From contig OZ218963.1 of assembly GCA_965112735.1 (NCBI GenBank), positions 2,480,001 to 2,544,000 of the forward strand: a stretch of 64,000 nucleotides of DNA. The letters are read 5' to 3'. The notes beneath the pieces were generated by a model that was not told the origin of the DNA, did not search any database, and was given only the letters and a program-made list of their open reading frames with translations. Source of the DNA: Phaeosaccion multiseriatum. Lineage: Eukaryota; Protista; Ochrophyta, other classes. Of this stretch, positions 1 through 20,393 are shown one piece after another. The position numbers and the translations under genes are program-made. The first letter of the stretch is position 1, and each line of letters begins with the position of its first letter.

Positions 1-729
1 GCCGGCCCCTGAAGGGAATAAGCGAGAAGCTGCGGTTGAATGGTGCAGCTATGAAAGGGATTGATGAGAATTTGCTTCTCCCAGCGGAGAAGGAAGAGAA
101 GCGAGAAAGAGGGCTGTGACTTGTCTTCGAGCGCAGACAGGGTAGATGGTGCAAGTGGTGACCACTTCGTAGGGTTTTCTTCGCCGCCCCTTGGTCGCAC
201 GTCTAAGCGGTACGTTCTCAATGATCTCCTCTTCCTTCTTGATGCCTGGCTGCTCTTGTCCACGCCCCCCGCCCACTCTGGGCCGCCCTTTCTGAACATA
301 CCTTAACACACTTATTACCCCTGTTGTTCTCGCCCCCTTTTTACATCTTTTTTTGTGCTAGCAGGGGTGAGAAAGACGAGGATGAGGACGAGGAGGATGG
401 AAATACGGGCGACAAGGGGGGGCGGTGGTGGTGGGGGAGGGTTTGGGAAGAATAGACCACCAGCGCAGACTGAGTTCACTCGAGGCGGCAAGGGATCCAA
501 AGGAAGGGTTGCCTACCTGGCAAACTCCCTACTACAGGGCCTCGACGCCAAGCCGCCAGTCTGAAGTGGGAGGGCATGCCCAACGTGACGTGTTTGTCTG
601 GCCCCCCCACCTCTTCCACAACCTTGGAGAGGACCACCAGCAGCCTCTTTGCGCATGGGATGTATCGTCAGAGTGTGTACAAGCTTATGGGTGGACGTCG
701 CCGCAGCGGGCTGTGTCTGTCACCAGCCT

Positions 730-1145
730 CGAGCAGGAGGAGGAGGAGGAGGAGGAGGAGGGGAGGGAGGGAAGAGGGGGAGGAGGAGGAGGAGGAGGAC
801 CATCATCATCAGCAGCAAGAGAATCACAAGGGGGAGGAGGGGGGGGGGGGGGAAGGAGGAGGAGAATCAGCTGTGGGAGGAGGAGGAGGAGGAGGAGGAG
901 GAGGAGGAGGAGGAGTAGGAGTAGGAGTAGCAGGTGGTGCTGGTGCTGGAGGAGACGGGGGGGGGGGGCGGGGGAGGAGGAGGAAGAGTTGCAGGTGCTG
1001 CTGAGGCTGGAGAAGGAGGGGGGGGAAGGAGGAGGACGAGGAGGGGGAGGAGCAGCAGCAGCAGCAGCCGCCACAGCACTGTGGCCGGCACGGAGGATCA
1101 GGGGCAGGAGCATCTGTAGCGCCTGCAGAGGCTGCTGCTGCAGAG
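730..1145. repeat. (GGA)n/(GCA)n/poly-G low-complexity tract in host-like DNA
   Basis: Direct runs of gga, gca and g; ORFs here are homopolymeric in all frames. Confidence 0.85.
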
Positions 1146-1609
1146 GGTGGTGTCGCTTTCGGGGGAGGTGAGAGTACCCACGAGAGGCAGCTATGGAAGA
1201 GGAGGGAGGCCGCGAAAAGGAGAAGAAGAGAGGCAGGCGAGGAGGGAAAGGAGAAGGCGAGGCTCCAGAAAAAGGCAGCGCGGGAAAGGGAAAGATTACA
1301 GCAGGATAAGGACCGGCCAGAGGGTGATTTACCCGTTTCCGTGTGCATAGTATTGTATATACAACACTTAGGTCTTCTACAGTTGCCTCTACTCTGGGGA
1401 GGAGAAGGAGAGAGAGGGGTGTCGCCGCAGGCGGGGAAAATTTCTAATTTCTTTTTTTTCTCCTTTTTTGGGCCGGCGGTCGACGGTATAAAAGTGCGCC
1501 ACTTTACGGTCGTGGGGAGGAAAAGCCATCTGGTGCCATTCTCCATTTTCTCTTCCCTCCCCCAAGTGCGGATTTTCGTGGTTCGCGGTGGCACGAGCAT
1601 GTCCTAAGC

Positions 1610-1703
1610 ACTTGATTAAAGTATACTTTTTTAAAACGTGAGTTAAAGGTCGATGTCCCAAAAAAGTGTAAGCGTTCGTATTAGTTCTATACTTTAATCA
1701 AGT
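1610..1703. repeat. 94-bp element with perfect 16-bp inverted ends
   Basis: acttgattaaagtata (1610-1625) and tatactttaatcaagt (1688-1703). Confidence 0.75.
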
Positions 1704-2088
1704 CAAACCGTCATCGTTCGTCAAAATTCGGTCTGAGACCCAAAGATGGCACCTCACAACCAAAGGGCCCCATCTGGTGTGAGAGAATAACACCCCTAAG
1801 TTTCCATCCCTACATAAGGGGTATTTTCAAGATGAGACTTTGACCCACGATAGACTCATTTCGTTACGTATTGGGCCACGTAACCATTACGTAAGGATGT
1901 TACGGTTACACTCTCTCATTTCTCTCTTGGTATATCCCCCTGCCTCTCACCCTTCTTACTTCTCACTTCCTTCTTGGCGAAGAGTGTAAGGTGCAGTTTC
2001 TTCTCAGCGGAAGGGACGACAGAGGTATCATTTCCCGTCTTCCACGTACTCGAGCCCACTTAGGGACTTCTGTGTTCGCGCATTTCTC

Positions 2089-3271
2089 ATGGGGCAGACA
2101 TTGGGCAAGAATCGAAACGTGGAGGAGACACGCTCGACTACTCCTTTCGAGAGAAGAGCAACTACATCAGAGATGGGTGAACTGGGCTCTAAATTATCTC
2201 ATCTCATACTAGAACCGGTGGAGAGGACATTTTCCCACATGGAGGACAACGCAAGACTTCTCATCGCATCAAGAGATCATCCATCTACCCCCTATTGCAT
2301 CAAGTTGAACGATGTTACCGTTATCGATTTGACACACAACCTTTTCATCGACCGCACCCTACGGGACTTGATGGAGCCTGTTCTCCGCCGAACCGACCCT
2401 CCCACCACTTATCCTAATGTCCAGAGGATCGACCTTGGCTGGAACCGCTTACGCCCGGATGCCCTGGAGACGGTTTTTCGGATGCATGAGGTGTTCAACA
2501 AGGCCATCATTGATGTACGACACAATTATATAGCACCACATGAAGTTGTGGCTAGACTCAAAGATAAAGAGGAGCAGCCCCTGGCAGAATGGATCAGATA
2601 CGATGATGAGATTTACAGTCTTGTGTGGGAGGGCAAGAGCATTGTGGAAAATATCAAAGGGAGGGTGCAGACTTTGGAAGGAACGTCAAAAAAACAAGCA
2701 AAAAGACCTCGAGATGCAAATGAGAAGAGACCTCGTCACACGCCTCAGGAGAGAAGGATTTCTCAACGTGGCTGAAGTCAACCTTCCGAAGAAGAGGAGC
2801 GACGAGGATGGAACGATTTATCTGTCGGACGATGATAAAATGCAATGGGATGGCGTCATACACGCACAAAAGGGAGGAAACTGGACCATCTTCTTCATGG
2901 AGTGCAAGAGTCATGTTGAATGGTATCACATCGACCCTACACGGAGGACATACAAGAAGGAAAAAGAGGTTGAAGTTTCCGTGGAACGAAAGGCGAGGGT
3001 GATGAGATGGATTAGTTCACTGCAGAGGGGTGGACATCTGCAAGGTACGGATCCCTCCAGTTGTGTTCGGCAACAGGGACGTGTAATCTGTGATCTCCTT
3101 CAGGCGTCTCAAGACAAGACCGACATTAACTTTGTGTTTGGAGGTAGCGTACTACTAGAAGAACAAACGGCCATGCTCAAAACCCAAGCCATAGTTCCCG
3201 CCACCATTGCCAATGGAGCGTTGCAACTCGATCTTTCATCAGTCTTGCTCGGGACGGGCGCACAATCGTAA
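2089..3271 (+). pseudogene. Frameshifted LRR-like + PD-(D/E)XK nuclease-like protein (Crinkler/CR-toxin-like architecture)
   Basis: ORF 2089-2775 has LRR-like IDLTHN, IDLGWNRL, IDVRHNYI. Overlapping ORF 2540-3271 has QWDGVI...FFMECKS. The frames join near 2675-2695. Confidence 0.55.
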
Positions 3272-3546
3272 TGAGGCCGTAGCCGAGGAGTGAGAGCAAC
3301 GGTTGTGACTCGGAGGAGGCGGGCTGATCTGTAGTGGAGATACAGTACCAGCGGGGAGTGGTTGTGTTGGTGCAAGGCTCGGTGGGGGTGCTTGGGCGAC
3401 GCAGTCTTCGCCTTGTCTGGTGGTGCATGTGTAGCCTGATCGCTCTCTTGAGTTTGTCCCTCCCTATTGCGAATCGGCAGGACTCGCGCCACGTCTCTGA
3501 ACATGGGCACGGAGGGCTGGGGCCGGAGATGGGGACGAGGGCTCAT

Positions 3547-4062
3547 TTAAGTGAGCCAAAGCATTATGTTCGCCACCGAAATCCTTGCATGGTTTCTCTG
3601 ATAGCTAAGTATAGCATTCTTTAGGCTATAGTTCGTGATGAAGTCTTCGTCCGTCAAAACGTCACCGGTCACTGGATCCCGCCGTGGCGCCTCCATGGGC
3701 GCACTGTCCAACCACTCTCGCAGAGCCTCCCTCGAGTACGATATACCACCCCTTGTGACCACTGGATCTTCCATCCAATCAAGTGTGATTGGGCACGTGA
3801 AGTAGTCAGGTATCCACAGAACATCCGAACGTCCTCTCACATGATTCAAAACGTTTATACATCTCTTGAAAAGACCATTGGTATGCACCACGGAAAACCC
3901 CTTCTGTTCGGACACTTCTGTGCATGCAGTGCGCAACACTTCGTTCGACTCACATGAGCTTTGGAACCTATAGAGGTCCCCAACTGTTATATATCCCGCT
4001 TTCTCAAAAGTCGACGATGTTACTTCGCCAACACCCTTGAGATGTGTGATGGGGGTGTCCAT
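3547..4062 (-). CDS. Helix-hairpin-helix + U-box E3 ubiquitin ligase protein
   Basis: N-terminal LKGVGEVTSSTFEKAGYITVGDL (HhH); U-box IPDYFTCPITLDWMEDPVVTRGGISYSREALREWL...DPVTG. Confidence 0.85.
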   Translation of the reverse strand: MDTPITHLKGVGEVTSSTFEKAGYITVGDLYRFQSSCESNEVLRTACTEVSEQKGFSVVHTNGLFKRCINVLNHVRGRSDVLWIPDYFTCPITLDWMEDPVVTRGGISYSREALREWLDSAPMEAPRRDPVTGDVLTDEDFITNYSLKNAILSYQRNHARISVANIMLWLT

Positions 4063-4197
4063 TTGGTCTGTGTTCCTAGTAACACAAAGAAAAAGCGAGA
4101 AGGGAAACGAGAGTTGTGTATGCGAACATAACTAGTGCGCATCATTGCTCATCCTCGGCGACTTCCGATACAGGGGGTCACCAGTCAAGTACACACG

Positions 4198-4446
4198 TGT
4201 GCTAAGCTGAGATAGTAAAGACGTTAGGGGGGTTTGGACCAAGTATATGCTGCGCTTATGATGGGGCGTCAGTGTCCGTATTGATAATATATCTCTACTA
4301 CTCGCTGATGCAAAGCTTGTGTCCACAAAGAGGAGGGTGAAACGCCAGAGCCGTTGAGCCCCCTCGGGACATGCCTAGGAAACCGACATTCTTATTATAC
4401 CCCAGAATGTAGGATCGGAAACCCTCAGGCAGGACAATCTACCACA
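4198..4446 (-). repeat. LTR1 (3' LTR)
   Basis: tgtgctaagctgag...caatctaccaca; left flank CACG. Confidence 0.95.
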
Positions 4447-4560
4447 CTACCCCCAAGCGACAGTTCGAGTCGATGCGGAGGCAAAGGTGTCTAGCTAGGT
4501 TATGTCCTCTTGCGCGTGCGCGCGGATCGCGGCGGCTTGGCAGCCGACCGCGTCGTAGTC

Positions 4561-7500
4561 TTACGCAGATAGGCTCGGACTGCGCTGATGGAGACAGTTC
4601 TGAACGAGGCGTCGCACGTCCTTGTCTAGCGTATACCAGGTGAACTTCTCCTTAATAGCACTCAAGGTGTTTGTCTCTCCCTGATGGCCCATCATACCCT
4701 GATGGCCAGTCACACACAGTCTAAGGTGCATATCCTCCGCCTTGGCTCCCAACGAGGGAATCCAAATGCGGGTGCTGTCAGCGGGGTTGCTCGTCGGATG
4801 GCACGCTCGAATCAACCCGTCGTCGCCAACTGATGAGAGGAGCAGGCGGCGCCCATTCTCCCCCACCTCCTTGCTAGTCTGCTGGAGCTCCTGAAGAGCG
4901 TCTGCCTGCAGACTGGCAATCTCAGTCTTGGAGGGCCAAGTGAAGTCGTCACACATGGTGTCAAACACTTGCATAGGCCCAAACTTGCCCAAGGCGAGCA
5001 CACTAGGGGTGAGGCTCACCGGGTGCGTGTACCGCCTGCAAATGGGGTCGGCCCAATCATGGAGGTGGCCAGGGAAATGGACAATGACATAGTCAAAGCT
5101 CTGAAGGCGTACGGCCTGACGCTGCAGCCTGTCCCTCATAGGCTTAGTCATGCCGGGGTACTTGCTGTCGTTGCTCATCAGGAACGCCAAATTGCGATGG
5201 TCGCAAAAGATGTGCACTTTCTGTGCACCGACCAAGGCGTACTCGCTTTGGATCAAGCCTCGGAGTGTTGCGTCTCCCTCCTTGTCTATAGTGGCCCGAT
5301 TCAGCTCTGCGTCTTCGAAAGGGCCGGAGCCGAAAGCCACTGGGATGTGGTTCATCTTATGTACCGGAAGGCACAGCTCTTTGGGGTCAATGTACGTGAT
5401 CATACATCCCCAGTAGAGGTCGCTAGCGTCTGGGAATACCAGTGCCAGTTTGGTTGGGTCTGGGTGCGACAGCACCGTGTTCTGTGCAAGTACGCGCTTA
5501 ATCTTGAAGAAAGCGTCGTCGTGCTCTGTGTTCCACCCCACAGAAGCCAACGGAATCGTCTTGGCCATTGCCTTGGAGCGCTTGTGCTGATGAGGCTTAG
5601 CGTTAGCCTGCCCAAGGGCTTTGTTCAACAGCGCGTTCAAAGGACCCACTAGCTTAGCGAAGTCCTTGATGTATCGATGAACCCATTGCAGACTGCAGAG
5701 GAAAGTCATCAGATCTCCAGCCGTCTCTGGGGCCGCGAGACTGGTCAGGCCCTGCACTCTGGCGGGGTCATGTCGTGTGCCGCGTCGGTCGTGTACGCGG
5801 CCAAGGAACTTAAGCTCGCTACTGAAGCGGAACGAGCTCAACCCTATCTTGATGTTGGCGCTGTGGAGGCGCTCCATCGTCAATCGAGTGAGGCGCACCA
5901 TGTCCTCTCCCACCTTTGCCCAGTACGCTACGTTGTCGATGTAGACGGCGTGGGTCTTGCACAACTCTTTGCGAAAGAGGTGGGTCATCTGGCCTTGGAC
6001 GTAAGCGCCCGAGTTCTTAGCCCCCTGGGGCACTCGAGTTGGCGTCACCTTGCCATTTGGGAATATATAGGTGTGAGCAACTTGGCTCTGCTTGCCTAGT
6101 GGGAATTGCCAGTACATGTCAACCCCATGTATCTCGATGAACCATAGGCAACCCAACATGGAAGCCACAGCGTCATCAATGTTCATCATCCCAAAATCGA
6201 CCTTCTGTACCTTTTCATTGACTTCTCGAAAGTCGCAGACGATACGGTACTTGCCTGGCTTGCCGGGTTTGCCCACTGCAAACGCCGGGCTGCCATGAGC
6301 GCTCTGCGGGTTACTGTAATCCAGGCCTTTGCCTATCAACTTGTTACAAAAGTCGTTCACAAAAGCACCCTTTGCGCCTTGTTGCCTTATGGGGAGACGG
6401 GAGCTCGGTACCTTATTGGTAAACGTCACCTCCATTGGCTCTACGTTAGCGGGGCCATCGCTATAAAGCAACTCATCCCGCCACACGTCAAACTCTAAAA
6501 GAGCTTCCATCATCTGCTCTCTCAGCTCCGCAGGGAAATCATGATCAGTGATTGCATTGTCCACGATGGGACCTAGCACCTCTCTACGGCGTGCCTCAGA
6601 GGGAGGGACTCCCTCTGATGGCCCTTGAATAGTATCTGGTACACCTTCATACTCTTCACGGTCTTTATTGTTAAGCGGTTGGCCGCCTATGGCGCTAACC
6701 TCTGGTGCCTCTGCACTGGCGACAGGAGGGGGGCTCTCGGCCGCGACCTCCTGCGCTCCTACCCCCAATACTTTCACGGGGAAGTTGCTTGCCTCAAAAT
6801 CAGCATAGTCTTGGATGGCTTCAACGCCCATAGAACACACGCTCTTCTCAACACTCTGCTGCTTAGTCGGGGCAGCTCCTGTCGCAGGAGGAGCGTCGTC
6901 ACGCTCCCTCTGCAGGGCCTCATCCGACCGCTTGCTGTGCACTCTGTGCAACTGCTCAGTCAAAGACTCCAAGCCCAACGCCTTATGTAAAGGCCGACCC
7001 AGAATCAGTCTGCTGCCCAAGCTCTCAAGAACCAGTATGGATCTGAACTGCTTGTCCAACTGCGCTGTACTCACACTTCCGTGACTCAGCTCTATCTCGA
7101 GGTGACTGCCGCACAACACTTCGTTGGCAGTCACAGGTCCGGCAGCAGTGACGCACTCCGAAGGCTCACAGGCCTCTAGTACACCACCACTCTTGCTGAC
7201 CCATGTGCGCGCTAGGTCACCACCTATGACCGCACCCACATCGCATCCGCTGTCCAACAAGGCTTGCGCCGACATCCGCACCTCCGGAGTCGTGTCATTC
7301 ACGAGGACCACGCTCACGCGATCTCCCGTGAGGTCCGTGGCGACTGGCCCTGGCTCCGAAACACCTCCGGCAGCTGAAGAAGAAGAAACGGACGTCACCC
7401 CCGGCTTCTTCCCCTCAGCCTTCCTCTGCTCCCACGCCTTCTGCTTCTCTGCCTTGATGCGTTTCTTGTCGTCGGCAGTGGCTGTGGGACAGTCGTCAAT

Positions 7501-8460
7501 GCGATGCAGCTTGTCACAGGCCCAGCACTTCGGCGTACGGGCCTTCTTCAATGGGTTGCTGGCTGTCTCTTTGCCCGCTGCTGTCTCCTTCGAGGAGTCC
7601 TCTGCACCCGTACGCTTAAGCTGCTGCTCCTGCTGCCACTTGCGCTTGCCGCCTGCACCTTTGCCTTGCCCACCACCGCCTCCCCCGCTGCCTCCAGATG
7701 CTCCTTGGTCACCCTTGAGCCCGGGAAGGAAATGTTCGGCTCTGCCGCCGATACGCCGTGCTGCCGCTCTCATGGTGGCCCACTGGCTCAAGTTCTTGAC
7801 GAATTTCTCCATCCACTCCCCGTGATGCTCTCCCCAGTCCTTCTGTCCATCTTTGAAAGCGTCCACCAGCATCTTCTCCATGCAGGGGTCCCAATTCTTA
7901 ACGATGGTTAGCAAGCCCCGCTGCATGCCTCTGGCGGCGTGCTTTCCGTTCGGACCAAGGAAGTTCGCATCGCTGGGGTTCCAAACAAGATATTCTTTCC
8001 TCGCCGCCGACTCGTGAATCGCGCGAAGGTATTGCTGGCACATATATTGCAGATTGTGCTGGAATTGAAGAGGGTCCGGATCATACACGATTGTCGTCCT
8101 CCGGATAATCTCGTTAAGGGTGGCGTTCCCGTTGACGTCCTCCCTGCGATTCTTCTTCAGCCACCTCTCCAAGTAATCCCGTACCATCTTGGACGTGAGC
8201 TGAGCCTCCGTTACCTTTTCGGCAATGGCTATTGCAAAACGATGGACTGGGCTGATGAGCTGCACCATGCATGCTGGGGATATCAAAAGGCTTATCCTTA
8301 TCCCTGAGCGCGGACTGATCGAACTGCAGTATGAACTCGCTGACGAGTTCCGCGGATAGAGCCGTCCGTAGCTCCGGATAATGGGAAGGGTCCTTCGTGA
8401 GAATGTCTTGAACCGCCATGATGCCGCTCCTCCAATCGGTCTGAGAAAATCCTTCTCCAA
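4561..8460 (-). CDS. Gag-Pol polyprotein (Zn knuckle, protease, RT, RNase H, integrase Zn finger only)
   Basis: CWACDKLHRIDDC; ALLDSG; YRIVCDFR..N, PQGAKNS, YIDN; PDAS...DHRNL; GHQG...NCLH followed by a stop, with no integrase core. Domain order PR-RT-RH-IN is gypsy-type. Confidence 0.92.
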   Translation of the reverse strand: MEKDFLRPIGGAASWRFKTFSRRTLPIIRSYGRLYPRNSSASSYCSSISPRSGIRISLLISPACMVQLISPVHRFAIAIAEKVTEAQLTSKMVRDYLERWLKKNRREDVNGNATLNEIIRRTTIVYDPDPLQFQHNLQYMCQQYLRAIHESAARKEYLVWNPSDANFLGPNGKHAARGMQRGLLTIVKNWDPCMEKMLVDAFKDGQKDWGEHHGEWMEKFVKNLSQWATMRAAARRIGGRAEHFLPGLKGDQGASGGSGGGGGGQGKGAGGKRKWQQEQQLKRTGAEDSSKETAAGKETASNPLKKARTPKCWACDKLHRIDDCPTATADDKKRIKAEKQKAWEQRKAEGKKPGVTSVSSSSAAGGVSEPGPVATDLTGDRVSVVLVNDTTPEVRMSAQALLDSGCDVGAVIGGDLARTWVSKSGGVLEACEPSECVTAAGPVTANEVLCGSHLEIELSHGSVSTAQLDKQFRSILVLESLGSRLILGRPLHKALGLESLTEQLHRVHSKRSDEALQRERDDAPPATGAAPTKQQSVEKSVCSMGVEAIQDYADFEASNFPVKVLGVGAQEVAAESPPPVASAEAPEVSAIGGQPLNNKDREEYEGVPDTIQGPSEGVPPSEARRREVLGPIVDNAITDHDFPAELREQMMEALLEFDVWRDELLYSDGPANVEPMEVTFTNKVPSSRLPIRQQGAKGAFVNDFCNKLIGKGLDYSNPQSAHGSPAFAVGKPGKPGKYRIVCDFREVNEKVQKVDFGMMNIDDAVASMLGCLWFIEIHGVDMYWQFPLGKQSQVAHTYIFPNGKVTPTRVPQGAKNSGAYVQGQMTHLFRKELCKTHAVYIDNVAYWAKVGEDMVRLTRLTMERLHSANIKIGLSSFRFSSELKFLGRVHDRRGTRHDPARVQGLTSLAAPETAGDLMTFLCSLQWVHRYIKDFAKLVGPLNALLNKALGQANAKPHQHKRSKAMAKTIPLASVGWNTEHDDAFFKIKRVLAQNTVLSHPDPTKLALVFPDASDLYWGCMITYIDPKELCLPVHKMNHIPVAFGSGPFEDAELNRATIDKEGDATLRGLIQSEYALVGAQKVHIFCDHRNLAFLMSNDSKYPGMTKPMRDRLQRQAVRLQSFDYVIVHFPGHLHDWADPICRRYTHPVSLTPSVLALGKFGPMQVFDTMCDDFTWPSKTEIASLQADALQELQQTSKEVGENGRRLLLSSVGDDGLIRACHPTSNPADSTRIWIPSLGAKAEDMHLRLCVTGHQGMMGHQGETNTLSAIKEKFTWYTLDKDVRRLVQNCLHQRSPSLSA

Positions 8461-8486
8461 AGCTTTTATAAAGCGAGAACTAGTTC

Positions 8487-8735
8487 TGTGCTAAGCTGAG
8501 ATAGTAAAGACGTTAGGGGGGTTTGGACCAAGTATATGCTGCGCTTATGATGGGGCGTCAGTGTCCGTATTGATAATATATCTCTACTACTCGCTGATGC
8601 AAAGCTTGTGTCCACAAAGAGGAGGGTGAAACGCCAGAGCCGTTGAGCCCCCTCGGGACATGCCTAGGAAACCGACATTCTTATTATACCCCAGAATGTA
8701 GGATCGGAAACCCTCAGGCAGGACAATCTACCACA
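8487..8735 (-). repeat. LTR2 (5' LTR)
   Basis: Same 249 bp as LTR1 by eye; right flank TTTC. Confidence 0.95.
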
Positions 8736-8815
8736 TTTCATGTTTTCATTTTACGAAATTACAATATAACTAGCACTCAAGTCGAACGTTCGTAGAAAGA
8801 GTCTCCAGCACTACC

Positions 8816-11263
8816 TCAGACATCGATCGTGTACACTTTCTCTCTCGTAGAAAGAGTCTCGTCCAGCACTACATCAGAGCCTTGGGTGAGGACCACGGTG
8901 GTGCCAACGATGGCCGCCCGTTTGGCCTTGTTCTTGATGCGAATGCTGCTGACCTCCATGCTCGAGTCGAGCGTCACCGTCAGCGAGCCCCCCTTCCCGC
9001 GCACTGCGCAGAAGGTGGAGTCCATCTCATCGTCGCACTTGTCAGCGGTTCTCTCGGCAAACCTGTTGGGTGGCCTCTTGCTGCCCTCGATGGAGGTGGG
9101 AGTGATCTTGGCGCCGTCTGCGTCATACAAAGTCACCTCCGCCAGCATTAGCGACTTGTTACTCGGGGCTGTGATCACCAGCTGTACCACTGTGTTGCAC
9201 GGGAGAGGGTGTAAGCCAGGCAGGCAGAGGCACAAGGAGTGGAGGTCAAGCGGAGTTGATTGGTTGGTTGGTTAGATGGTGCCATGATAGAGCAACGAAT
9301 GGGGCCTGTTTCTCCTCATTGTGTACCTCCCCCTCCCAAGACACAATTCCTCTGAGGCCACCACTACCGCACACACGGACTGAGCTGAAACCTACGAAAT
9401 GAGACCACGTCTCCCCCCCTCCCCTCCCTTGTGTGCCCCCACTTTCGCGCAGTCTGCTCAACGAAAAAGCTTACCTTCTTTCTGAGCCCAGTCCTGAATA
9501 TCCCAGAATATCTCAGGCGTGATTAGTCCCGCAAAATTAAGGGTGGGGCTCCCGGAATTAATCACTCCGTAAATGTATCCCTCTCCATTGTAGACCGAGC
9601 TCCCGGACATTCCCCCAGCCACGTCGCATGTCTGAGTGACAATCGCCCTGTGCTCGGCGTCTTCCCCATACACGTAATTGGTCAGCACCTGGAAGTTGCA
9701 GGGCGCGGGGCCGGAGTTCCACATCTGACTGCCCCCGGCGATGTCACCAGGATCTGTGAGTGTGATTGACAGCACAGCAGAAAGAAGGAGAACGTGCAGC
9801 AGGGGGACGGGGGAGAGACAGGCAGTCATAAGAGGGGAAGCCGGCCGGGAGGGGGGGGGCAAGGAAAGCGGTACGCGGATTGCACAAACCAGCCAGCCAG
9901 CCAGTCAGTCAGCAACAACAAGGGCGTGGAGAGTGCATCAAAGCGAGCCAAGCGACACAATGCAACCCTTCCGGCCGCAGAGAAGGAGCACACGCTACTT
10001 ACAGCCAGTGTAGCCGAGGTCTGCAGGAAGATCGGAAGTAAAACTGGTGCCTCTCATGCCCAGGTAGCCCGTGACATCGCCGATGTTTGCCCCGTCGCCC
10101 GGGCGCTCCTTCATAACGATGACGGCAATGTCAATCGTCCAAAAAGGGATGCCATTTTCTTCCTCAGTAAAGCCCCACTCGGGCATGATTGTGACATAAT
10201 CAGCATCCCACCTGCCGTAGGGTTCCTCAAAGGTGGCGGTCTTCCCCGGAGCGAAGGTCCAATCCGAAAACAAGTCCCCGGTGTCTCTGTCCTGAATGCA
10301 GTGGGCGGCGGTCAGGACGGCGTACTTCGACATGATGGCCCCAGAACAGATAAAACCCCCAGCCACTCCTTCAAACCCCACTCTACCAATAGTCCTAAAC
10401 GGAAACTGATTAGAGTCTGTGATGCGGACGCGGGTGTCTGCGCCAATGATGCCCAAGTTGCGAGCCCCGCCCTCCTCCTCCTCCTGCTCTGCATCTCCAT
10501 CACGCATTCCCAGCGGCACGTCAGGATTGTAGGGTCGAACGGCCTGGACGGAAGGTCCCTGAGCCCGCTTGTCCGCTTGAGAGTCCTCCTCGAGTAGCAC
10601 ATACATGGACCCGTCAGGAGTTGCTCGGAGGGCGTGGATGCGAGGACCACTGGTGCCCTTGCCCTTGGCCTTGGTGCCGTTGCCCCCCTTATCGCTGAGA
10701 TCCACCTCCTCCAAACTTTCCTCAGCTGGTCGCGGGACACGCTTGGTCTTGCCGACGTAGCGGAACTTCTCCTTGGCGAAGCGGTTGACAACTCCCGCCT
10801 CGATCTCCTCGTCCGCATCCTCCACGAAGCTGTCGTCCTTGATGAGAGGGTGCTCACCGGGGCAGGCGCCATCCGTCACTTGCACGCCTTGCATGGTCGC
10901 AATGCACTCGTTCTCGTACGTGACTCCATCCGATCCGCACACGAGCCGCTTCTGCACGCGGCAGCCCACAGCGCCGCCTACTGCTGGCGGGGATGATGCC
11001 GATGTTGCACTCGTGCCGAGGAGGAGGAGCGCCAGGACAGGAAGCACTGATAGACCAACGCTCCGCTTGTTGTTTTTGTTGTTGTTGGTGGTGGTGGTCT
11101 TGCTGCTGCGCGTGCCCCCCACAAGGAGTGCTGCTGGGGAAGCATCGGTGCCGAGGCTGGCACCAGCAGTTGCAGAGAAGCGGCGGGCGGACAGGAGGCG
11201 AGGCATGATACCAATGATGTGCATCAACCTTGGAAGTGTTTGTAATGGGGATTCGTTGTGCAA
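8816..11263 (-). CDS. Three-exon host-type secreted trypsin-like (V8-type) serine protease with Kazal domain and C-terminal beta-sandwich (discoidin-like) domain; exons ~11263-10003, 9753-9475, 9189-8816; start codon uncertain
   Basis: Kazal VCGSDGVTYENEC; catalytic triad LTAAHC / DIAV / GGMSGS. Introns GTAAGT...CAG (10002-9754) and GTAAGC...CAG (9474-9190) join in frame, giving GYPGD and KEVVQ. Confidence 0.88.
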
Positions 11264-11266
11264 TCA

Positions 11267-11550
11267 GAGCCGTGCCAAAGAAAACATTGTGAGAGGCAGA
11301 GCCGTGCCAAAGAAAACATTGTGAGAGGCAGAGCCGTGCCAAAGAAAACACTACTAGATCGAAGGTCACGCTAAGTTTGCTTTCTGCCGGGGTAGCGTGT
11401 GCCGTGCCAAAGAAAACACTAGATCACGCTGCAGCAGAAGTACCTACGGTACCATCGAAGGTCACGCTAAGTTTGCTTTCTGCCGGGGTAGCGTGTGCCG
11501 TGCCAAAGAAAACACTAGATCACGCTGCAGCAGAAGTACCTACGGTACCG
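11267..11550. repeat. Nested tandem repeats (32-bp x ~2.7, then 96-bp x 2) sharing gccgtgccaaagaaaacac/t
   Basis: Directly visible repeats. Confidence 0.85.
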
Positions 11551-12956
11551 TAGGTCAGCTTCGGATCTTCCCAGGAGAGGTGCGGTCCAACCTTCTTCAC
11601 GCCTGGTCTCAGATCGAGAAGTGTCGAATCCTTGTTCCCATGGGCCTCCTCCCAAGCCCCCAAACAGCTGCACTGCCACGGCACGGTCTCCACAGCCTCA
11701 GCATGCTCCATCGTGTGCTGCATCCCCTCCTATCCTCCCCCCCCTCCTCCTGCCCCCGCAAATCATGCCGCCCGCGGCTTTTTTCTAAAAGTAACACATG
11801 TCTGCACATCGCACAGGTGGCGATGTTCCCAGCGACCAGGCACAGCAGCGCTATGGCGAGGCGGCCACGAGGAAGCAGGGGTGCTAGCTCTCCTACTACT
11901 GGCCCTCGCGCTGCAGTGCTACTGCAGGGAGGCCCTCCCTCTCTCCTGTGAGAGAGCAGATGCCCTCTCTGCTGCTACAAGCCCAACTGTTTCACGCGGG
12001 CGTTGTCATGCTTTGCACTTCCCTTCAGAGAATGCACGGAACGCAGCAGTAGTGCGGAGCGCAGAGAAGAGGGCTCGTCACCGGCGGTCTCTGGCATTGG
12101 GCGCCACTGCTGCAGGCACGGGAAGGAGCAAGAAGGGAACAAAGGGGAGGAGGTGCAGCGTGACCATGAGAAGCGGCAGGGACGGCACGATTTGCTGCAG
12201 AGATAAGCTTGCTCTTGCAGGTCCGTGTGGACGAGCAGCAGATGGCATATGTGCCTTCCTTTACATAGGCGACCAGCAGGCAGAGGCGAGAAGCCATGTG
12301 CAGCTTGGCCGAAGCGAGGTGCGAATGGTGGCCTCCAGCGTGAAGCCAAATGGGGCCGACGAGGTGCTGCAGAGTGGCACTAACAGAAGCGAAGGGCCTT
12401 CTCTTGGGCCAGCGGGTGGAGTCCGCGATAAAGGACCGTGCTGCAGCGAGCGATGAAAATCAGCCGCTCGTGAATCCGCAGGAGGTGAGACCCCTTTGTA
12501 GTTTGAAGGCGGAGACAACTCTGATGTATCCGGTCTCTTTCATCCGCGACCTTCCAACACGCTCATTTCCCGCTCTTGTGTCTCCTATCTATCCTCTGGT
12601 GGCCCCTCGCTGTGCTGTGCTGTGCTGTGCTGCGCGTCCCACCTCCCCTCTTAGACGGAGGTGCAGGGGCAGACGGACATCAAGGTGGTGGAGTGGCGGG
12701 AGGAGGGCAAGGCCAGCATCTTACAGGGCATGCTCCTTCATCGATGAGGTGCGACATGCCTTCTTTCCTCAACTACGTACCGCCCCGCGGCATCCCCATG
12801 GACCTACTGCACCCGCTCATGATGGTGTCCACCACAGACAGACCTCACCATCCGCTGCGAGGAGGAGGGCGTAGAGATGCCTGGGGCCGCCAGGCCGCCC
12901 TGGACCTGCGGGCGCGCGTGTGACGTGAAAAAACTACAAAAAGCGCACATGTTTTC

Positions 12957-13205
12957 TGTGCCAAGCTGAGATAGTAAAGACGTTAGGGGGGTTTGGACCA
13001 AGTATATGCTGCGCTTATGATGGGGCGTCAGTGTCCGTATTGATAATATATCTCTACTACTCGCTGATGCAAAGCTTGTGTCCACAAAGAGGAGGGTGAA
13101 ACGCCAGAGCCGTTGAGCCCCCTCGGGACATGCCTAGGAAACCGACATTCTTATTATACCCCAGAATGTAGGATCGGAAACCCTCAGGCAGGACAATCTA
13201 CCACA
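12957..13205 (-). repeat. LTR3, same family and orientation
   Basis: 249 bp; one visible difference (tgtgcC vs tgtgcT); left flank TTTC, right flank CACG. Confidence 0.95.
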
Positions 13206-13246
13206 CACGTCATTTTCTTATTGTAAAGAGTCACGTTGCTCTCCAC

Positions 13247-13879
13247 CTAGGATAGGAGTAGCCGCATGGATAAGGTAATAGCAACCCCAAAGCCAGCCTG
13301 GCAGCCAGCCTTGTCTCTATTAGCTTTATCCGTGAGCCATCCTAAACGACCAACCTGCTGGGAGGTGAGTGAGAAACGGGCCACGCACCGTTTCTCACCG
13401 TATTTGCCTGGGCCTGGGCCATTGACATAATACTGACTTTCAACATTATAGTCAACTGAGAAAGATGAATCTACCAGCTCCATGAAGGTTGTTCCAAGGA
13501 CGTCAATGTCCCAGAAGTTTTGCTTTGGCGGCGAGAGATGTACTCTGAAAGGGGTCGCGCCATTGAGAGATACCTTGATACTGTTTCCAGGAACTTCGAC
13601 ACCCTTCGTGAGAACATCCCACGTAGGCCTTCCGAGGAACGTCTGGTATACTCCAGTCTCCACCAAAAAGGCTGATCTTATCCTCTTTCCCCTAAACAGT
13701 AAGTCCATGCCAACGAAGCAACGATGGTAAGATCCCAACACGGTGCCATTTAACCTCGTGGAGACAGGTTCTTTATTTCCAACCTCGGAGCGATTGATAA
13801 AGCCTAAGGCGGCAGCAACCTCTCCAAGAGTGACTACACCAATATCTCCATCTCTGCGCACGTTTTTAATATCACTCAA
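13247..13879 (-). pseudogene. Retropepsin-like (clan AA) aspartic protease domain, degenerate
   Basis: FLVETG (DTG changed to ETG) ... IDVLG motif; upstream ORFs are fragmented. Confidence 0.5.
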
Positions 13880-14189
13880 TAGGATATCGATCGCGGGTTC
13901 TTCGACAACGGGGGGGGTCTTCTATGTCGAACATCCTGGCGTCTTGTAGGGCTCGCGTTGACAGTGAGACACGCTCTTCTTCAACAATCTCACCTTTCCT
14001 GATCTCCGAGATGCCTTTGAAGCCGTCGAGAAACGGCTGTGATATCTCTGCCCCCCTGTCTAGACGATAAAGTACTTTGCTCCGGAACGAATTTTCCTTA
14101 TCTCCAGTTGTAATACCCCTCATGAGACCATGGCTGCGACGATACTGTCACAGAAAATAATCAACATCGATGCAATATTGATGAGGACG

Positions 14190-14758
14190 AGGCACATCTT
14201 GTCGGGATCACTAGATGTAACGTCCTCGATGCACCGGAACAAAACCTCACCGTCCTTCCTGTAGACGAACTGCTCCGGCGCACAGAAGAAGTTGACCCGA
14301 CTCTCCCCGTTGCTATCGATGTATTCCATGCCGCAGAGGCGCTGCACGTCCGCGTTGAGGTGAACGGGTTGCCCTCCAAGACACCCTGTTGTGGATCATG
14401 GGCACATGGTTTGTGTGGCGTGCAGGGGCAAACACATACCCGGATATCGAGACTGATATGGATCGGGCGTCAAACGCCCGTTTTCCTCCATATTCGGGCG
14501 TCAAACGCCCGTTTTCCCCCATATTCGGGCGTCAAATACGCCCGTTTTCCCCCATATTCGGGCGTTTTCCCCAATATTCACGCGTCTTCCACCTGACCCA
14601 CCTTGTTTTCACCTCCTAATCCTTCCGAGAAGCTTTTGTAACGGACAGTATGTTCTGAGGTTTTTGAGGCCAGGAATGGTTCATAGACTTCACAACAATA
14701 ACAGATCTACAGACGACGAATAACAACGCTAGCGTATCACTGAACGCGGGAAACCAGA
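14190..14758. repeat. Diverged direct duplicate of ~16681-17236
   Basis: Both encode QRLCGMEYIDSNGES..VN.FCAP.QFVYRKDGEVLFRCIEDV.SSDPDK on the minus strand, with shared flanks. Confidence 0.85.
14463..14580. repeat. 31-bp hairpin minisatellite (~3.5 units)
   Basis: tcgggcgtcaaacgcccgttttcccccatat; stem cgggcgt/acgcccg. Confidence 0.85.
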
Positions 14759-14980
14759 AATGATACCTCTGGGGACAAGGGAGCTTCTCTTCAGGTGATG
14801 CGTTGAAGGAAAGGGGTGAAACAATCGAATCTGTATGGTCTTTTTCCTCCGATGCACTCACATAAAGCTACCATCCTCCCTTTACCCCCGCTCTTCCTTC
14901 ACATCTGAGCAGGACTCTGTGGACGAGGGACCAGTGGTAGAATCGCTACCAGACCGCAATCGGAGAAAGAACTGTCTGAA

Positions 14981-15496
14981 TTGGAGTCGAAGGCACAGGA
15001 GGTTGTACAGGAGACAGTCGCCACGGCGGACGCAATCGACCACATCCTTACGCTCAAACAAGGCCGCGGCGGGAAGAAGAAACATATCGAGGATGAGCGG
15101 AAAGTTGCAGAAGAGAAGGCGAGGATCATGAGGGAGACAGCGCAAAAATTACAGGCTGCTTTTGAAGAATCTTCCGGGACACAGGACATTGAGAAGCTTG
15201 GGAAGTTGACTGCACTCGTCGCCGCACAGCTGGAGAGCTCAAAGGTATTTTTGAAAAGCTTAGAGTTGAGGCAGAAGGAGAAGGACCAGGCCAAAGGAAG
15301 TGGTATCTCCGGAGGAAGGGGTTCAAAGGTATCTTCTGACCCGGTCGATGACAGTGAAGAGGACGATGATAGAGACAGCAACGATGGAGACGAGGGACAT
15401 AGGGGAGAGGAAGAAGAAAAAGATGGGGACACACAACAGGATGACGATTACGAAGAGGAGGGGGGAGGGGGGGACCCAGGGGATTCCCCCAACTGA
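14981..15496 (+). CDS. Hypothetical coiled-coil/acidic protein
   Basis: 171-aa ORF with protein-like charged composition; start uncertain. Confidence 0.45.
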   Translation: MESKAQEVVQETVATADAIDHILTLKQGRGGKKKHIEDERKVAEEKARIMRETAQKLQAAFEESSGTQDIEKLGKLTALVAAQLESSKVFLKSLELRQKEKDQAKGSGISGGRGSKVSSDPVDDSEEDDDRDSNDGDEGHRGEEEEKDGDTQQDDDYEEEGGGGDPGDSPN

Positions 15497-15970
15497 TTTC
15501 ACGACAGAGGACCGGGGAAAGGGAGGAGGACAGCGGCAACGACGTTCCCGGGAGAGTGTACCCGAACTTGTCGGGTCTTTCCCCAGCTTCCCCAGGCAGT
15601 CAGTAATTGGAAGAAGCACTTGGGTCACCCTATCAGTCACAGAGTCCGTACTCCCTCTTCTTCGACCCTGAAACGTGGGATGCACTGGTCAAAATGGACC
15701 CTACCAGCGGTGGAGGGAGGGGTGGTAGACCATCTCCTACCCTTCGGGCAATTGCCAGGCAACAACTGGAGAAGGCTGCTCAACTCTCGAAGGGGAGCAT
15801 GTCAGTATAGGCGATAAGACTGTCGCAACCACGGCTCGATTGTAACTCCGGCATGTACCGTGTCGACAATAGATGGAGCACAGTGCGATGACAGGACGAA
15901 GCCCGGCACATTAATAGATAAAGCATCAAAGAGACGCGTACGGTCAAGACAGTAGTGAAAAGTAATCTTG

Positions 15971-17000
15971 TTAAGGTTGTTCTTCTACATAATCATCGTC
16001 TTCGTTGTCTTCATCTTCTACGCCTGACTCCCAGTCGTCCTCCCACTCTGACTCTTCCACATGTTGACCATGGTCACCTTCGTGGAAGAAGTAGTCATCG
16101 GAGATGTACTCGTCACTATCAGTGTCTGATAATACAACTTCTTCTACCGGGCAGAAGGGGAGGCCATAGCCTCCACACCCCCTCTTCATACACGGCACAT
16201 TCCTTCTCATCCACACTTGTTTCTCTTTTTCAAAGGGGCACCACGGGAAGGGGGATCTCTCTCCTGGGCCTCTGGGAGAGACCTCCCAACCCTCTGCATC
16301 TTCATCGCTCACATCCTTTCCCCTCCCTTCCCTCCTACGACGGACGAATCTGCGGCCACACACTACAACTCCCCCACCTTCCTCGTACTCGGACAAACTT
16401 GTGTCCCCACCTCCCAGAGTCCTGCTCCAGCGTCGCGAGGCGTAAGAAGAGGTTGAAGGGGGCCCATGGCTCCCCACCGATGACCCGATCATGTTTGGGG
16501 TCATCACAGAAGCTCTCTGCTCTCAATGTCGCCACCTTTTCCAGCGCTAAAAATGTCAAGCTCATCGGTCTCCGCATGCGAAGGCTCTCCGCCAGGTTGG
16601 TTAGAAGAGAGGGTGAGGGGTAGATGGACCAGAAATAGCGGTGCCCTGCACTGCTTCCGGTGTTGACGGGCTGGTAATCAAGGCGCAACTTGTCGGGATC
16701 ACTCGATGCAACGTCCTCGATGCATCGGAACAAAACCTCACCGTCCTTCCTGTAGACGAACTGTGCCGGCGCACAGAAGGAGTTGACCTGGCTCTCCCCG
16801 TTGCTATCGATGTATTCCATGCCACAGAGGCGCTGCACGTCGGCGTTGAGGTGAACGGGTTGCCCTCCAAGACACCCTGTTGTGGAGCATGAACACATGG
16901 TTTGTGTGGTGTACAGGGGCAAACACAGACCCAGGTCGGTAAAGTCGAGACTGATTTGGATGAATACACTGTTTACACGTGTATCGGGCGTCAATAACAC
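15971..17000 (-). pseudogene. Fragmented hypothetical gene (overlapping ORFs 16335-17000 and 15971-16507)
   Basis: Paralogous to the 14120-14347 fragment; acidic C-terminus. Confidence 0.4.
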
Positions 17001-17339
17001 CCGTTTTCCCCCATATTCGCGCGTATTCCTCGTGACTCACCTTGTTTTCACCTACCATTCCTTCCGAGGATGTTCTGTAACTGAGAGTATGTTCTGAGGT
17101 TTTTGAGGCCAGACCATGATCCATCGGTCAGACACCACAAACACCACAAAGAGGAAGCTCCAGTGTTCACAATAATAGCAGATCATGCAGACGACGAAGA
17201 ACAACGCTAGCGTATCATTGAAAGCGAGGAACCAGAGGAGGATGGATGGTCATGGAAATCAACGAGGGCTTTTCATCGACACGACAGGTGAGGACGAGAT
17301 GGATCATGGTAGGGAATAGGGACAGGGGTACCACATATG

Positions 17340-17650
17340 TGGAAACACACACCGTTCACAAACGTTTGTAGAAGGCGTCCTTGGTGCCATAGTCATTGCT
17401 TTATCCGGGAGGGGGTTGCGATAAGATCTGTGGGAAAAAGGGGGTGGTTGCAACATTCGGATATCCGGTTATCGGAGGGCTGTGACAAAGCAGGGGCCAC
17501 TTACATGGGAACACACTCTGTGTACAAACGTTTGTAGAAGGCGTCCTTGGCGCCTTAGTCATTGCTTTATCTGGGCGGGTGGTGACGATAGGATCATTGG
17601 GAAAAAGAGAGTGGGGAAAGCATTCGGACAACCGGTTATCGGAGGGTGAT
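17340..17650. repeat. Imperfect ~165-bp tandem duplication
   Basis: acaaacgtttgtagaaggcgtccttgg...ccggttatcggaggg occurs twice. Confidence 0.8.
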
Positions 17651-18607
17651 GACATAAGGGAGAGAGGAGGATAACAAGAACTATCACTGTGGCCCATAGT
17701 ATAGACCTTGGGTGTTCTTCTGTTGACAGAGTCGCCTTCTGTTGTCATTTGAAGGGATGTGTGCAGGGGGTGAGAGAAACATGGGAGACTGAGTTCATTA
17801 CCGGTTAAATGAGACACACGCGTCAGAAGGTACACAAAGCGGGACACATAGTACACATGGCTTGGTTGTGTGTACATACCCACCTTGGAATCACCTTATT
17901 GTCGACGGTACGGGCTGACCTGTTGGGGAAATCGTTCATTTATAGGATAAAGGGAAGAGAAAATGAAGGAGTTGACGGGGGCGTGTGTTACGATGCAAGA
18001 GATAGGGGGTAGGCATTGCAAGCATAGCAGAGGTCAATCGTGTACCTTAGGTTCTTGCCTTTGCACCCTTGTACGTCTACCCGCCCATTTGAACACCCTT
18101 TTCGTAGCAGGTTACATGAGATGGACGGGAAAAGGCAGGGAGGGTGGTCGATAGGAAGAGTAAGACGTACCGAGTAGTTGAGAGGATCAAATGCGCGATC
18201 CGTGTCGCATGGTGTAGATAGATGCACCTGGGATGACAAGGAAAGTAAGAAAGATATCATTACTGGTTGAAGTGACTGATTGAAGTGACTGGGACAGATG
18301 TGTGGATTGACAATGTAACTGTAGAGGGGTTAGTTGAGTTATGGTATTGCATGGTAGAGTGTACAGACCGTGTGATGAAGAGGGTGGGAGAGAATAGTTC
18401 TTGCATGTGTTGTGAGAAGCAGTAATGTGATCCGAAACAAGTGAGAAACCGATGTGAAACGTCACGTACGGGGGGGTTTGACATCCTGACCTTCCCATTT
18501 GCCTTCTAAATGCTTGACCCCTTCGTTTTGTACCCCTTTCCCATTGTACTCTCCAAGCAGGCATTTCTACAGTCTTTACAGGACAAAGAGAGGAGGCGCT
18601 GCTTCCC

Positions 18608-19249
18608 GTGTTTGACGATGTAGACATGGATCTATTGGAGAGCCTTGTGGTTTCGGAAGACACTATCGGAGAAAGGTTGTTGGGAGAAGCAGGGACAGGA
18701 GGGGCCAGGGGACATTCCCCAGAGAGCACAGGATTCGGCTTGTCTGGAGGGGTGGGAGGGGCCAGGGGACATTCCCCAGAGAGCACAGGATTCGGCTTGT
18801 CTGGAGGGGCAGGAGGGGCCGGGGGACATTCCCCAGAGAGCACAGGATTCGGCTTGTCTGGACCTACTTACGGGACAAAAAGGGGTGCAATAGCCAACCT
18901 TGAGTCTCCGGGTCATCACCTCACCCATCGGACAGAAGAAATGAGTTTGTCTTCGATGTTTCATCGGCAAATGCAGATGCAACAAGCACAGGCGGAGCGG
19001 CAGATGCAAATGCAGCAAGTACAGGCGGGGCGACAGATGCAAATGCAACAGATGCAGATGCAACAGAATACTTTGACTATGAGATTTTTCAAGGCATCGC
19101 ATGCCACGCAGGAGAAGATGATCGGGGTACTTTCCCAAAAGCAAGAGAAAACGGACCGAACCCTCATCTCCCTTTCTGACAAAGTGAATACTCTGACGAC
19201 CACATTGTCTTCTACGAGCCAGATCATCCGTGAAGAAAACAACAAGTGA
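18608..19249 (+). CDS. Hypothetical protein with 3 x 20-aa repeats and a Q/M-rich coiled coil
   Basis: 60-bp tandem repeat encoding GGARGHSPESTGFGLSG; QMQMQQ repeats. Confidence 0.65.
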   Translation: MFDDVDMDLLESLVVSEDTIGERLLGEAGTGGARGHSPESTGFGLSGGVGGARGHSPESTGFGLSGGAGGAGGHSPESTGFGLSGPTYGTKRGAIANLESPGHHLTHRTEEMSLSSMFHRQMQMQQAQAERQMQMQQVQAGRQMQMQQMQMQQNTLTMRFFKASHATQEKMIGVLSQKQEKTDRTLISLSDKVNTLTTTLSSTSQIIREENNK

Positions 19250-19347
19250 GTACATGGTCAGGTCATTGTTAGTCGTCTCGTGTCGCGATTAATACGGGTC
19301 TATACTTACTTCTTCTCCTTTGCACTCTTTGTATCCCCCTGTTTTCT

Positions 19348-20393
19348 ATGTCATGTATCTACAGACAAGGGGAGGCACTGGCCCGAGTGGAGACTAGAAC
19401 GGGGGAGATGGCGGACAATGCCGGTCGAAAGAGTCGCATGGAGAAACTCACCTTTCTCCAGAACATGTTTCTCAGTACACTCGTCCGCCTCTTCAACACC
19501 AAGACGGGTCTCTATTTGTACTTCCCGGTGCCCGTTAACGGAGAGGTGATGGTCGCGGTACATGTATGGGCAGTGGAAGGACTTCTACGAGTGTTATCCC
19601 CGTTCATTCCCCACGTCGACTGCACTTCCTTCAAGAAGAACTTTATCGATGATACCATCCGAAGCTTTGGAGGGGATGGTGTCACAGACATGTCGGACTT
19701 CACTGTTGTCGCGTGCAACGCCCTTTTGAAGCGAACCCCGTTCGCGTTCGGAGCTTCCACGGGAGACTTGCTTGTCGGGTATGTGGGGACTCGAATGCTA
19801 CTGGTTCCCATCGCGGACTGGAAGTACATGGCCAACACAATCGCACACGTCCCCATCCCCGACATTGACATTTCGGTCATCATGGACAAGATCAACTGTC
19901 GCCTCATCAGCCGCATCCACACTTTCGACTACGTGAACACGTTTTATCGTAAGGGGGGTGCCAAAGAAGGTGAGTGGGGCAATAGTGGTGTATATTGGGG
20001 AGAGTGTATACATACATAGAAGTTGCCAAACGTTCATTTCGCTTTCAATACCGAGTGTCGACGCTTGACGAATTGTCCTATCTCCTTCGACCAAACGCTT
20101 TCGATACAGATTACATCAAGGAAATGGTGTTCATGATGTCTCCTATTACGCGAGAGGGCATGGCGTTTGTGTACAATGAGGTCAACGCTCTCTTCGGCAA
20201 AGACGAGGAACCACTCGACCAGACCAAGCACGTCAAGGCATTTGCAACAAGGGGCTCATTGGGTACGATTTTTGAATTCGATGTAGTTGAGACCAGGTTC
20301 AACGCAGGGATGTATGGGAAAAGGGGCGGTGGGAACATTGTCAATGAGTCTCCTCGTCGCAAGAAGAGGCCTCGCAAGTCTCTCACTGTGTAA
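19348..20393 (+). CDS. Hypothetical protein, probably split or frameshifted (ORFs 19348-20019 and 19995-20393), basic C-terminal NLS-like tail
   Basis: Adjacent overlapping ORFs; PRRKKRPRK at the end. Confidence 0.45.

Follow-up and report, generated by a model that had tools for sequence, protein, structure and literature searches.

In a 64-kb window of the genome of the alga Phaeosaccion multiseriatum, a retrotransposon locus with three long terminal repeats (LTRs) was found to enclose 4.2 kb of apparently host-derived DNA, the cargo, with a predicted serine-protease gene and its introns, and the swapped order of the short duplications around the LTRs made it probable that closed host DNA had been captured at this locus. 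The window, meaning the whole stretch of DNA that was analyzed, belongs to one assembly of this species (67 Mb, 22 contigs). The analysis was computational, and positions are given in window coordinates unless a contig is named.

Three direct copies of one repeat were detected by a repeat search, and their boundaries were fixed by reading the ends. Each LTR was 249 bp long and ran from TGTG to CACA. LTR1 and LTR2 were identical (0/249 differences), and LTR3 differed from both by a single change, T to C at position 6, which was private to LTR3. Based on the complement of the polypurine tract (PPT) next to LTR1 and the primer-position sequence of the family next to LTR2, the segment LTR2-internal-LTR1 was read as one minus-strand element and LTR3 as a solo copy. 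The locus order was CACG / LTR1 ... LTR2 / TTTC ... TTTC / LTR3 / CACG, so the layout claimed in the sequence-only reading, with gag/pol between LTR1 and LTR2 and the cargo between the two TTTC copies, was borne out by the LTR ends and the flanks. The parts of the locus were as follows.

4194-4197, no strand: left copy of the outer duplication CACG, matching 13206-13209
4198-4446, minus strand: LTR1, the 3' LTR of the element, 249 bp, adjoined by the PPT complement of the family as in other copies
4447-8486, minus strand: internal region of the element, with PPT complement, gag-pol open reading frame (ORF), deletion junction and primer-position palindrome
8487-8735, minus strand: LTR2, the 5' LTR of the element, identical to LTR1
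8736-8739, no strand: left copy of the inner duplication TTTC, matching 12953-12956
8740-12952, no strand: cargo of 4.2 kb, single-copy and of host-like GC content
12953-12956, no strand: right copy of the inner duplication TTTC, matching 8736-8739
12957-13205, minus strand: LTR3, solo copy beyond the 4.2-kb insert, one base off LTR1 and LTR2
13206-13209, no strand: right copy of the outer duplication CACG, matching 4194-4197

When the flanks were paired in the conventional way, they did not match: the element bounded by LTR1 and LTR2 had CACG on one side and TTTC on the other, and LTR3 had TTTC and CACG. The swapped pairs matched at 4 bp, and neither the CACG nor the TTTC pair reached 5 bp. 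The length of the target-site duplication (TSD) in this family was determined from a whole-genome search that gave 42 LTR matches, with flanks extracted for 30. Of 12 other copies, 11 had a 4-bp TSD and none a 5-bp TSD; 5-bp TSDs in the family were a finding that the sequence-only reading, which had assumed 4 bp, had named as speaking against it. Ten LTR pairs had a perfect 4-bp TSD (TGCC, TCGG, AAGT, CAAA, GTGG, GTTG, CAGA, CTGA, AGGC and CGTC), one solo LTR had CCCC, and in one further pair 3/4 bases agreed (GGGA/GGGG). No target preference was evident among these sequences, and the probability that both swapped pairs matched by chance was therefore about (1/256)^2, or ~1.5e-5. Two solo LTRs of the family, C12:461514-461761 and C9:143409-143656 (L025 and L030), had the same 12-bp flanks on both sides with the TSD CCCC, which suggested that, once the LTR had inserted, a segment was duplicated between contigs 12 and 9.

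An integrase event leaves a 4-bp duplication of target sequence that was contiguous at the time. The CACG pair thus indicated that bases 4193 and 13210 were once adjacent, and the TTTC pair that base 12952 once continued into 8740. Since 8740 also runs forward to 12952, the cargo must have been circular, a fragment with ends joined at a later point, or one unit of a tandem array in which every spacer had an LTR. The earlier claim that the ends of the cargo were once contiguous was supported in this way by two integrase-type scar pairs in swapped order. Four linear histories were worked through by hand and rejected on their scar arrangement. These were unequal exchange between sister chromatids (with the genes in either order), duplication of the element and its flanks in tandem, a nested insertion that popped out and re-entered, and a reciprocal exchange involving two linked insertions; all of them would leave TTTC on the outside, an A/B pair flanking the DNA in between, or a fourth LTR. 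The cargo (8740-12952) was not homologous to the flanks on either side, nor to the element interior (4447-8486). A tandem or recombinant element of the form LTR-int-LTR-int-LTR was ruled out by the dissimilarity of 8736-12956 to 4447-8486. Likewise, as the cargo did not resemble the flanks, their local segmental duplication was excluded.

The gene in the cargo was predicted to be complete, with a Kazal domain, an S1 serine-protease domain and a C-terminal beta-rich domain, as detailed below.

8816-11224, minus strand: Kazal + S1 serine-protease + C-terminal beta-rich domain gene, three exons and two introns
11224 (first ATG) to 10003, minus strand: exon 1, Kazal domain and first half of the S1 protease with TAAHC, 1222 nt
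10002-9754, minus strand: intron 1, GTAAGT...CACAG
9753-9475, minus strand: exon 2 with GMSGS, 279 nt
9474-9190, minus strand: intron 2, GTAAGC...ACACAG
9189-8816, minus strand: exon 3, ending in the stop TGA, 374 nt

Both introns were canonical (GT-AG), the exon lengths summed to 1875 nt (1222+279+374) so that the reading frame closes, and the first splice restored a GYPGD motif. The protease exons were searched one by one rather than as a joined protein, and the Kazal_1 (25.2 bits, cut-off 21) and Trypsin (24.0 bits, cut-off 20.6) matches both lay above the Pfam cut-offs. Further matches were PDB 3cp7 and Kazal inhibitors. Exons 1 and 2 were collinear with one remote homologue (P0001, residues 38-267 and 343-399), and exon 3 had a paralogue on contig 16 with 63% amino-acid identity. 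The catalytic Asp of the S1 protease was not located, unlike the His (TAAHC) and Ser (GMSGS) motifs. With in-frame exons, GT-AG introns and domain matches, the complete three-exon Kazal/serine-protease gene of the sequence-only reading appeared to be correctly called. Gene and element shared the same strand, and ~1.7 kb of DNA upstream of the gene was kept in the cargo. A direct repeat of 31-34 bp (88%) at 8790-8820 and 8845-8878 was also seen here, in which the last coding bases of the protease gene were copied into the 3' untranslated region.

The GC content of the cargo was 0.58, compared with 0.52-0.53 in the flanks, 0.51 in the window and 0.57-0.61 in the host loci sampled. As this value lay within the range of host loci, the cargo looked like ordinary nuclear DNA of the host; a fragment of a host pseudogene in the cargo, described below, also spoke for a host origin. 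The cargo could be told from the neighbouring ORFs by bulk and non-coding GC, but not by the GC content at third codon positions (GC3). The cargo was single-copy in the assembly. When the cargo DNA, and exons 1 and 3 as protein, were searched against the whole assembly for a donor, only the locus itself, the distant exon-3 paralogue on contig 16 and pieces of a RuvB-like gene on contigs 9 and 10 were recovered. Outside the assembly, a 27-mer from the cargo end was absent from the JGI metagenomes, the empty-site 30-mers were absent from IMG/VR, and protein relatives of the cargo were not found in the viral or metagenome contigs searched. The left flank of the locus was unique in the genome and the right flank was a repeat, so the assembly offered no paralogous empty site.

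To judge from its coding sequence, the resident element is a minus-strand copy of the Ty3/gypsy chromovirus type, and its family likewise looks chromoviral. The gag-pol ORF (4561-8460, minus strand, 1299 codons) followed the PPT complement at 4447-4458 and had the pol order of reverse transcriptase, RNase H and integrase (RVT_1 at amino acids 731-887, RT_RNaseH at 976-1122 and Integrase_H2C2 at 1253-1290). The LTRs were spaced by 4289 bp here and by ~5.5 kb in full-length relatives. In alignments to other copies a jump was found at internal position 143 (window ~4589), where 1261 bp were skipped; this deletion was unique to the resident copy, and the gag-pol ORF stopped 9 codons past the junction. 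In the full-length relative L012, the ORF over the deleted stretch encoded the last part of the integrase zinc domain and gave a weak Chromo match that missed the Pfam cut-off (E=3.6e-4), and no match to the integrase catalytic core (rve) was found in it. The resident copy thus lacks the chromodomain as well as the segment in which the integrase core would be expected, and would be incapable of self-integration. Due to this 1.26-kb loss, integrase would have to be supplied in trans.

No tRNA-complementary primer-binding site (PBS) was found beside the 5' LTR; the position was occupied by a 12-nt palindrome, AGAACTAGTTCT, at 8476-8487, which overlapped the last LTR base and occurred at the same place in all other copies. 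Window positions 1-20000 contained no tRNA genes, and no tRNA or Rfam family was detected in 3-15 kb. The closest other copies in the genome had LTRs at most 95% identical and an interior of ~93% identity. By these comparisons, the lineage of the element is present only in this composite within the assembly. The element itself appears to be very young.

Based on these data, roughly an even chance was given to a history in which host DNA, circular or joined at its ends and bearing an inserted LTR, entered the resident element by recombination between LTRs. Here we infer the circle, the order of events and recombination over other ways of joining. A young element that had lost the 3' part of its integrase gene would have resided at the CACG site. 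Separately, a 4.2-kb piece of host DNA with the whole protease gene, its promoter region and its introns would have existed as extrachromosomal circular DNA (eccDNA) or as a fragment later joined at its ends. The same lineage would then have inserted into this piece at TTTC, either as a full copy that later shrank to a solo LTR or as an LTR alone, and the resident copy is a plausible source of this second insertion. The same TTTC on both sides of the circle's LTR suggested that the DNA had already been closed when integrase acted on it. The circle could finally have been threaded into the chromosome by homologous recombination of its LTR (or element) with the identical resident copy, to yield CACG-LTR-gag/pol-LTR-TTTC-cargo-TTTC-LTR-CACG. 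Since LTR1 equals LTR2, LTR3 is only 1 nt off and other copies reach at most 95%, the resident copy would have been the only perfectly homologous partner and would have been favoured for recombination. The retention of two introns, in a gene lying on the strand of the element, pointed to capture at the DNA level and not at the RNA level. As no donor copy was left, the event resembled relocation of a gene (with the donor excised or lost) rather than duplication, or else it took place in another genetic background. The fuller story, in which the gene left its native locus as a circle, was hit by integrase while free and was rescued through the only identical LTR, inside an endogenous giant-virus region, was held more tentatively, at somewhat less than an even chance.

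Several points weigh against this history. A donor locus, a second copy of the cargo and a visible circle junction were all absent from the assembly searched, and with the donor absent the circular permutation is read from 4+4 bases only. The rebuilt TTTC site also lies within a short CATGTTTT repeat, where the local sequence is of low complexity. Two integrations by a lineage that has no other genomic copies make a demanding history, and the case is a single instance, read from the assembly. In addition, homologous recombination leaves no mark that distinguishes it from rival routes, so that of the earlier proposal of circular DNA and LTR-LTR recombination, the fit to the swapped scars stood, but recombination was not separable from an integrase route or from gene conversion.

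The integrase route would dispense with recombination. The ends of two complementary DNAs (cDNAs), or of one cDNA with an extra LTR, would have inserted in concert, with a 4-bp stagger, into two targets, the chromosome at CACG and a cargo circle at TTTC, after which one copy was reduced to a solo LTR. Each of the four junctions coincides exactly with an LTR tip and shows the 4-bp stagger of the family, and a single coupled event would account for the two integrations being side by side in a lineage that has no other copies. However, the resident copy is without the 3' part of integrase, so the enzyme would be required in trans, and an extra collapse step would be needed. To our knowledge there is no documented case of trans-paired ends bridging two targets in vivo, and this route was considered rather unlikely. 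The same swapped scars could arise without a free circle if a break in the resident LTR had been mended by gene conversion or gap repair, with one unit of a lost array LTR-TTTC-cargo-TTTC-LTR elsewhere as the template. Unequal exchange can expand arrays that started from one insertion, and local duplication is seen to have been active in the perfect tandem repeats of the cargo. Nevertheless, no trace of an array was present in the 22-contig, 67-Mb assembly and more steps are involved than with a circle, which left this explanation quite unlikely.

An error of assembly would leave an ordinary element at CACG, with the cargo and one LTR being a separate molecule or locus mis-threaded through the common LTR. 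Three nearly identical LTRs are a classic setting for mis-joining, and the locus was judged from the assembly alone. Against this, the 249-bp LTR is far shorter than long reads (a long-read basis is deduced from the 22 contigs), the cargo has an LTR at either end and is found nowhere else in the assembly, and LTR3 has its private base. Even then a circular molecule with an LTR at TTTC would still be required, and such an artefact was regarded as very unlikely. Capture at the RNA level was the least credible, indeed highly improbable. It would take a read-through or chimeric transcript, LTR3-cargo-LTR2-gag/pol-LTR1, reverse-transcribed and inserted whole at CACG, with TTTC matching by chance. 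The outer CACG pair is the expected trace of such a single-unit insertion, and multimeric cDNA arrays are known for Ty1. But the two sense-strand introns are still present, neither a palindromic primer site nor a family-like PPT lies beside the cargo, no progenitor or other copy was found in the assembly, the TTTC match would be a 1/256 coincidence, and standard strand-transfer logic would put the cargo at both ends.

Circles and LTRs have been connected in other organisms. Yeast forms LTR-bearing circles, which may re-enter at other loci with an LTR (PMC5173269, PMC4751563), and plasmids with a Ty delta LTR are routinely and deliberately integrated at chromosomal LTRs, a procedure called delta integration (bioRxiv 10.1101/2025.09.26.678811). 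As with the yeast GAP1/Ty circles and delta integration, a circle with an LTR and a whole gene is proposed here to have entered by recombination at a resident LTR, leaving the gene bracketed by direct LTRs. The two differ in that a GAP1-type circle is formed between two flanking LTRs and its LTR therefore has two different half-scars, whereas TTTC stands on both sides in the alga. Moreover, the algal event would be natural and apparently fixed, and would have taken place in a retrotransposon inside giant-virus-like DNA. The odds that the locus is a natural analogue of yeast delta integration were put at about even. Mismatched scars around individual LTRs are an accepted sign of inter-element exchange in plants (e.g. 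PMC4079214), and the recombinant or complex LTR elements of plants likewise have three direct LTRs under one outer TSD. Differently, the second "internal" region in the alga is not retrotransposon sequence, and its mismatched scars are reciprocal within one locus, which goes beyond linear unequal exchange. Gene capture through RNA (transduction of the maize Bs1 type, or retrogenes) also associates a host gene with LTRs, but the algal gene has both introns and ~1.7 kb of upstream DNA and lies outside the PBS-PPT interval, beyond the 5' LTR.

Reintegration of eccDNA is much discussed and seldom leaves a footprint legible from sequence alone. Swapped 4-bp integrase scars around three near-identical LTRs are such a footprint, and they read as the movement, at the DNA level, of an entire gene together with its promoter region and introns, with LTRs as the homology. 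Reintegration of this kind is already known; the natural swapped-scar form in an alga is new and has been seen once. If the proposed history is true, LTR-X-LTR with swapped TSDs would be a simple search rule for gene relocation via circles in any genome, and cellular genes could be relocated by cut and paste with LTRs as portable homology. It would also be one way in which cellular intron-containing genes come to lie in giant-virus-derived DNA, and, if it took place while the virus genome was still active, a DNA-level route for intron-bearing host genes into giant viruses. The capture may well have followed endogenization, when the region was by then plain host chromosome.

The rest of the window had long uninterrupted ORFs, namely an SNF2 helicase, Laminin_G_3/fn3 proteins and unknowns of 500-1350 amino acids. 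In view of uninterrupted ORFs of 589 to 1348 amino acids, the claim that the neighbours are intronless was plausible. A 1003-amino-acid ORF resembled the "EsV-1-213-like" cluster of Nucleocytoviricota (an Atlas lead), which was the sole viral pointer obtained, and the SNF2 ORF had no virus-named relatives. With long intronless ORFs, lower GC and the EsV-1-like lead, the flanks plausibly look like a decayed giant-virus insert. The term "virus-like region" of the sequence-only reading was therefore in keeping with the flank features and this lead, but no hallmark virus gene was shown in the window. No interrupted long ORF, which would prove that the flanks were once contiguous, lay at the CACG site.

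Two further features were present in the cargo.

12647-12880, plus strand: RuvB-like helicase fragment, degraded, frame-broken and intron-less, with its parent on contig 9 and a sister fragment on contig 10
11265-11549, no strand: perfect tandem repeats, 32 bp x 2.7 and 96 bp x 2 (100% identical), just upstream of the protease gene

The parent RuvB-like gene (C9:2278629-2279452) had a 580-bp intron at the point where the cargo fragment has none. The second degraded fragment (C10:3064476-3064542) was 93% identical and had the same 27-nt deletion, which suggested a common origin of both pseudogene pieces. The tandem repeats had a common CCGTGCCAAAGAAAACA core and terminated in an 18-bp perfect palindrome at 11538-11555; the array at 11265-11555 may be a promoter array or a fragile site. 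No sign of a circle junction was found at these repeats, where the sequence-only reading had suggested one.

Beside the composite, at a distance of 12 bp, a solo 224-bp LTR (TG...CA) of another family was located at 13222-13445, with the TSD TTAT at 13218-13221 and 13446-13449. More than 40 copies of this LTR at 99-100% identity were found genome-wide, many of them paired ~1484 bp apart, and the family looks like a very recently active element of the TRIM type (terminal-repeat retrotransposon in miniature) with 4-bp TSDs. The minus-strand frame at 13450-13879 was open for 157 codons to the edge of the 224-bp LTR and ran on into it (listed as a 210-amino-acid ORF at 13247-13879). This frame may belong to a gene with a 3' end that was struck by the 224-bp LTR and, 12 bp beyond, by the composite.

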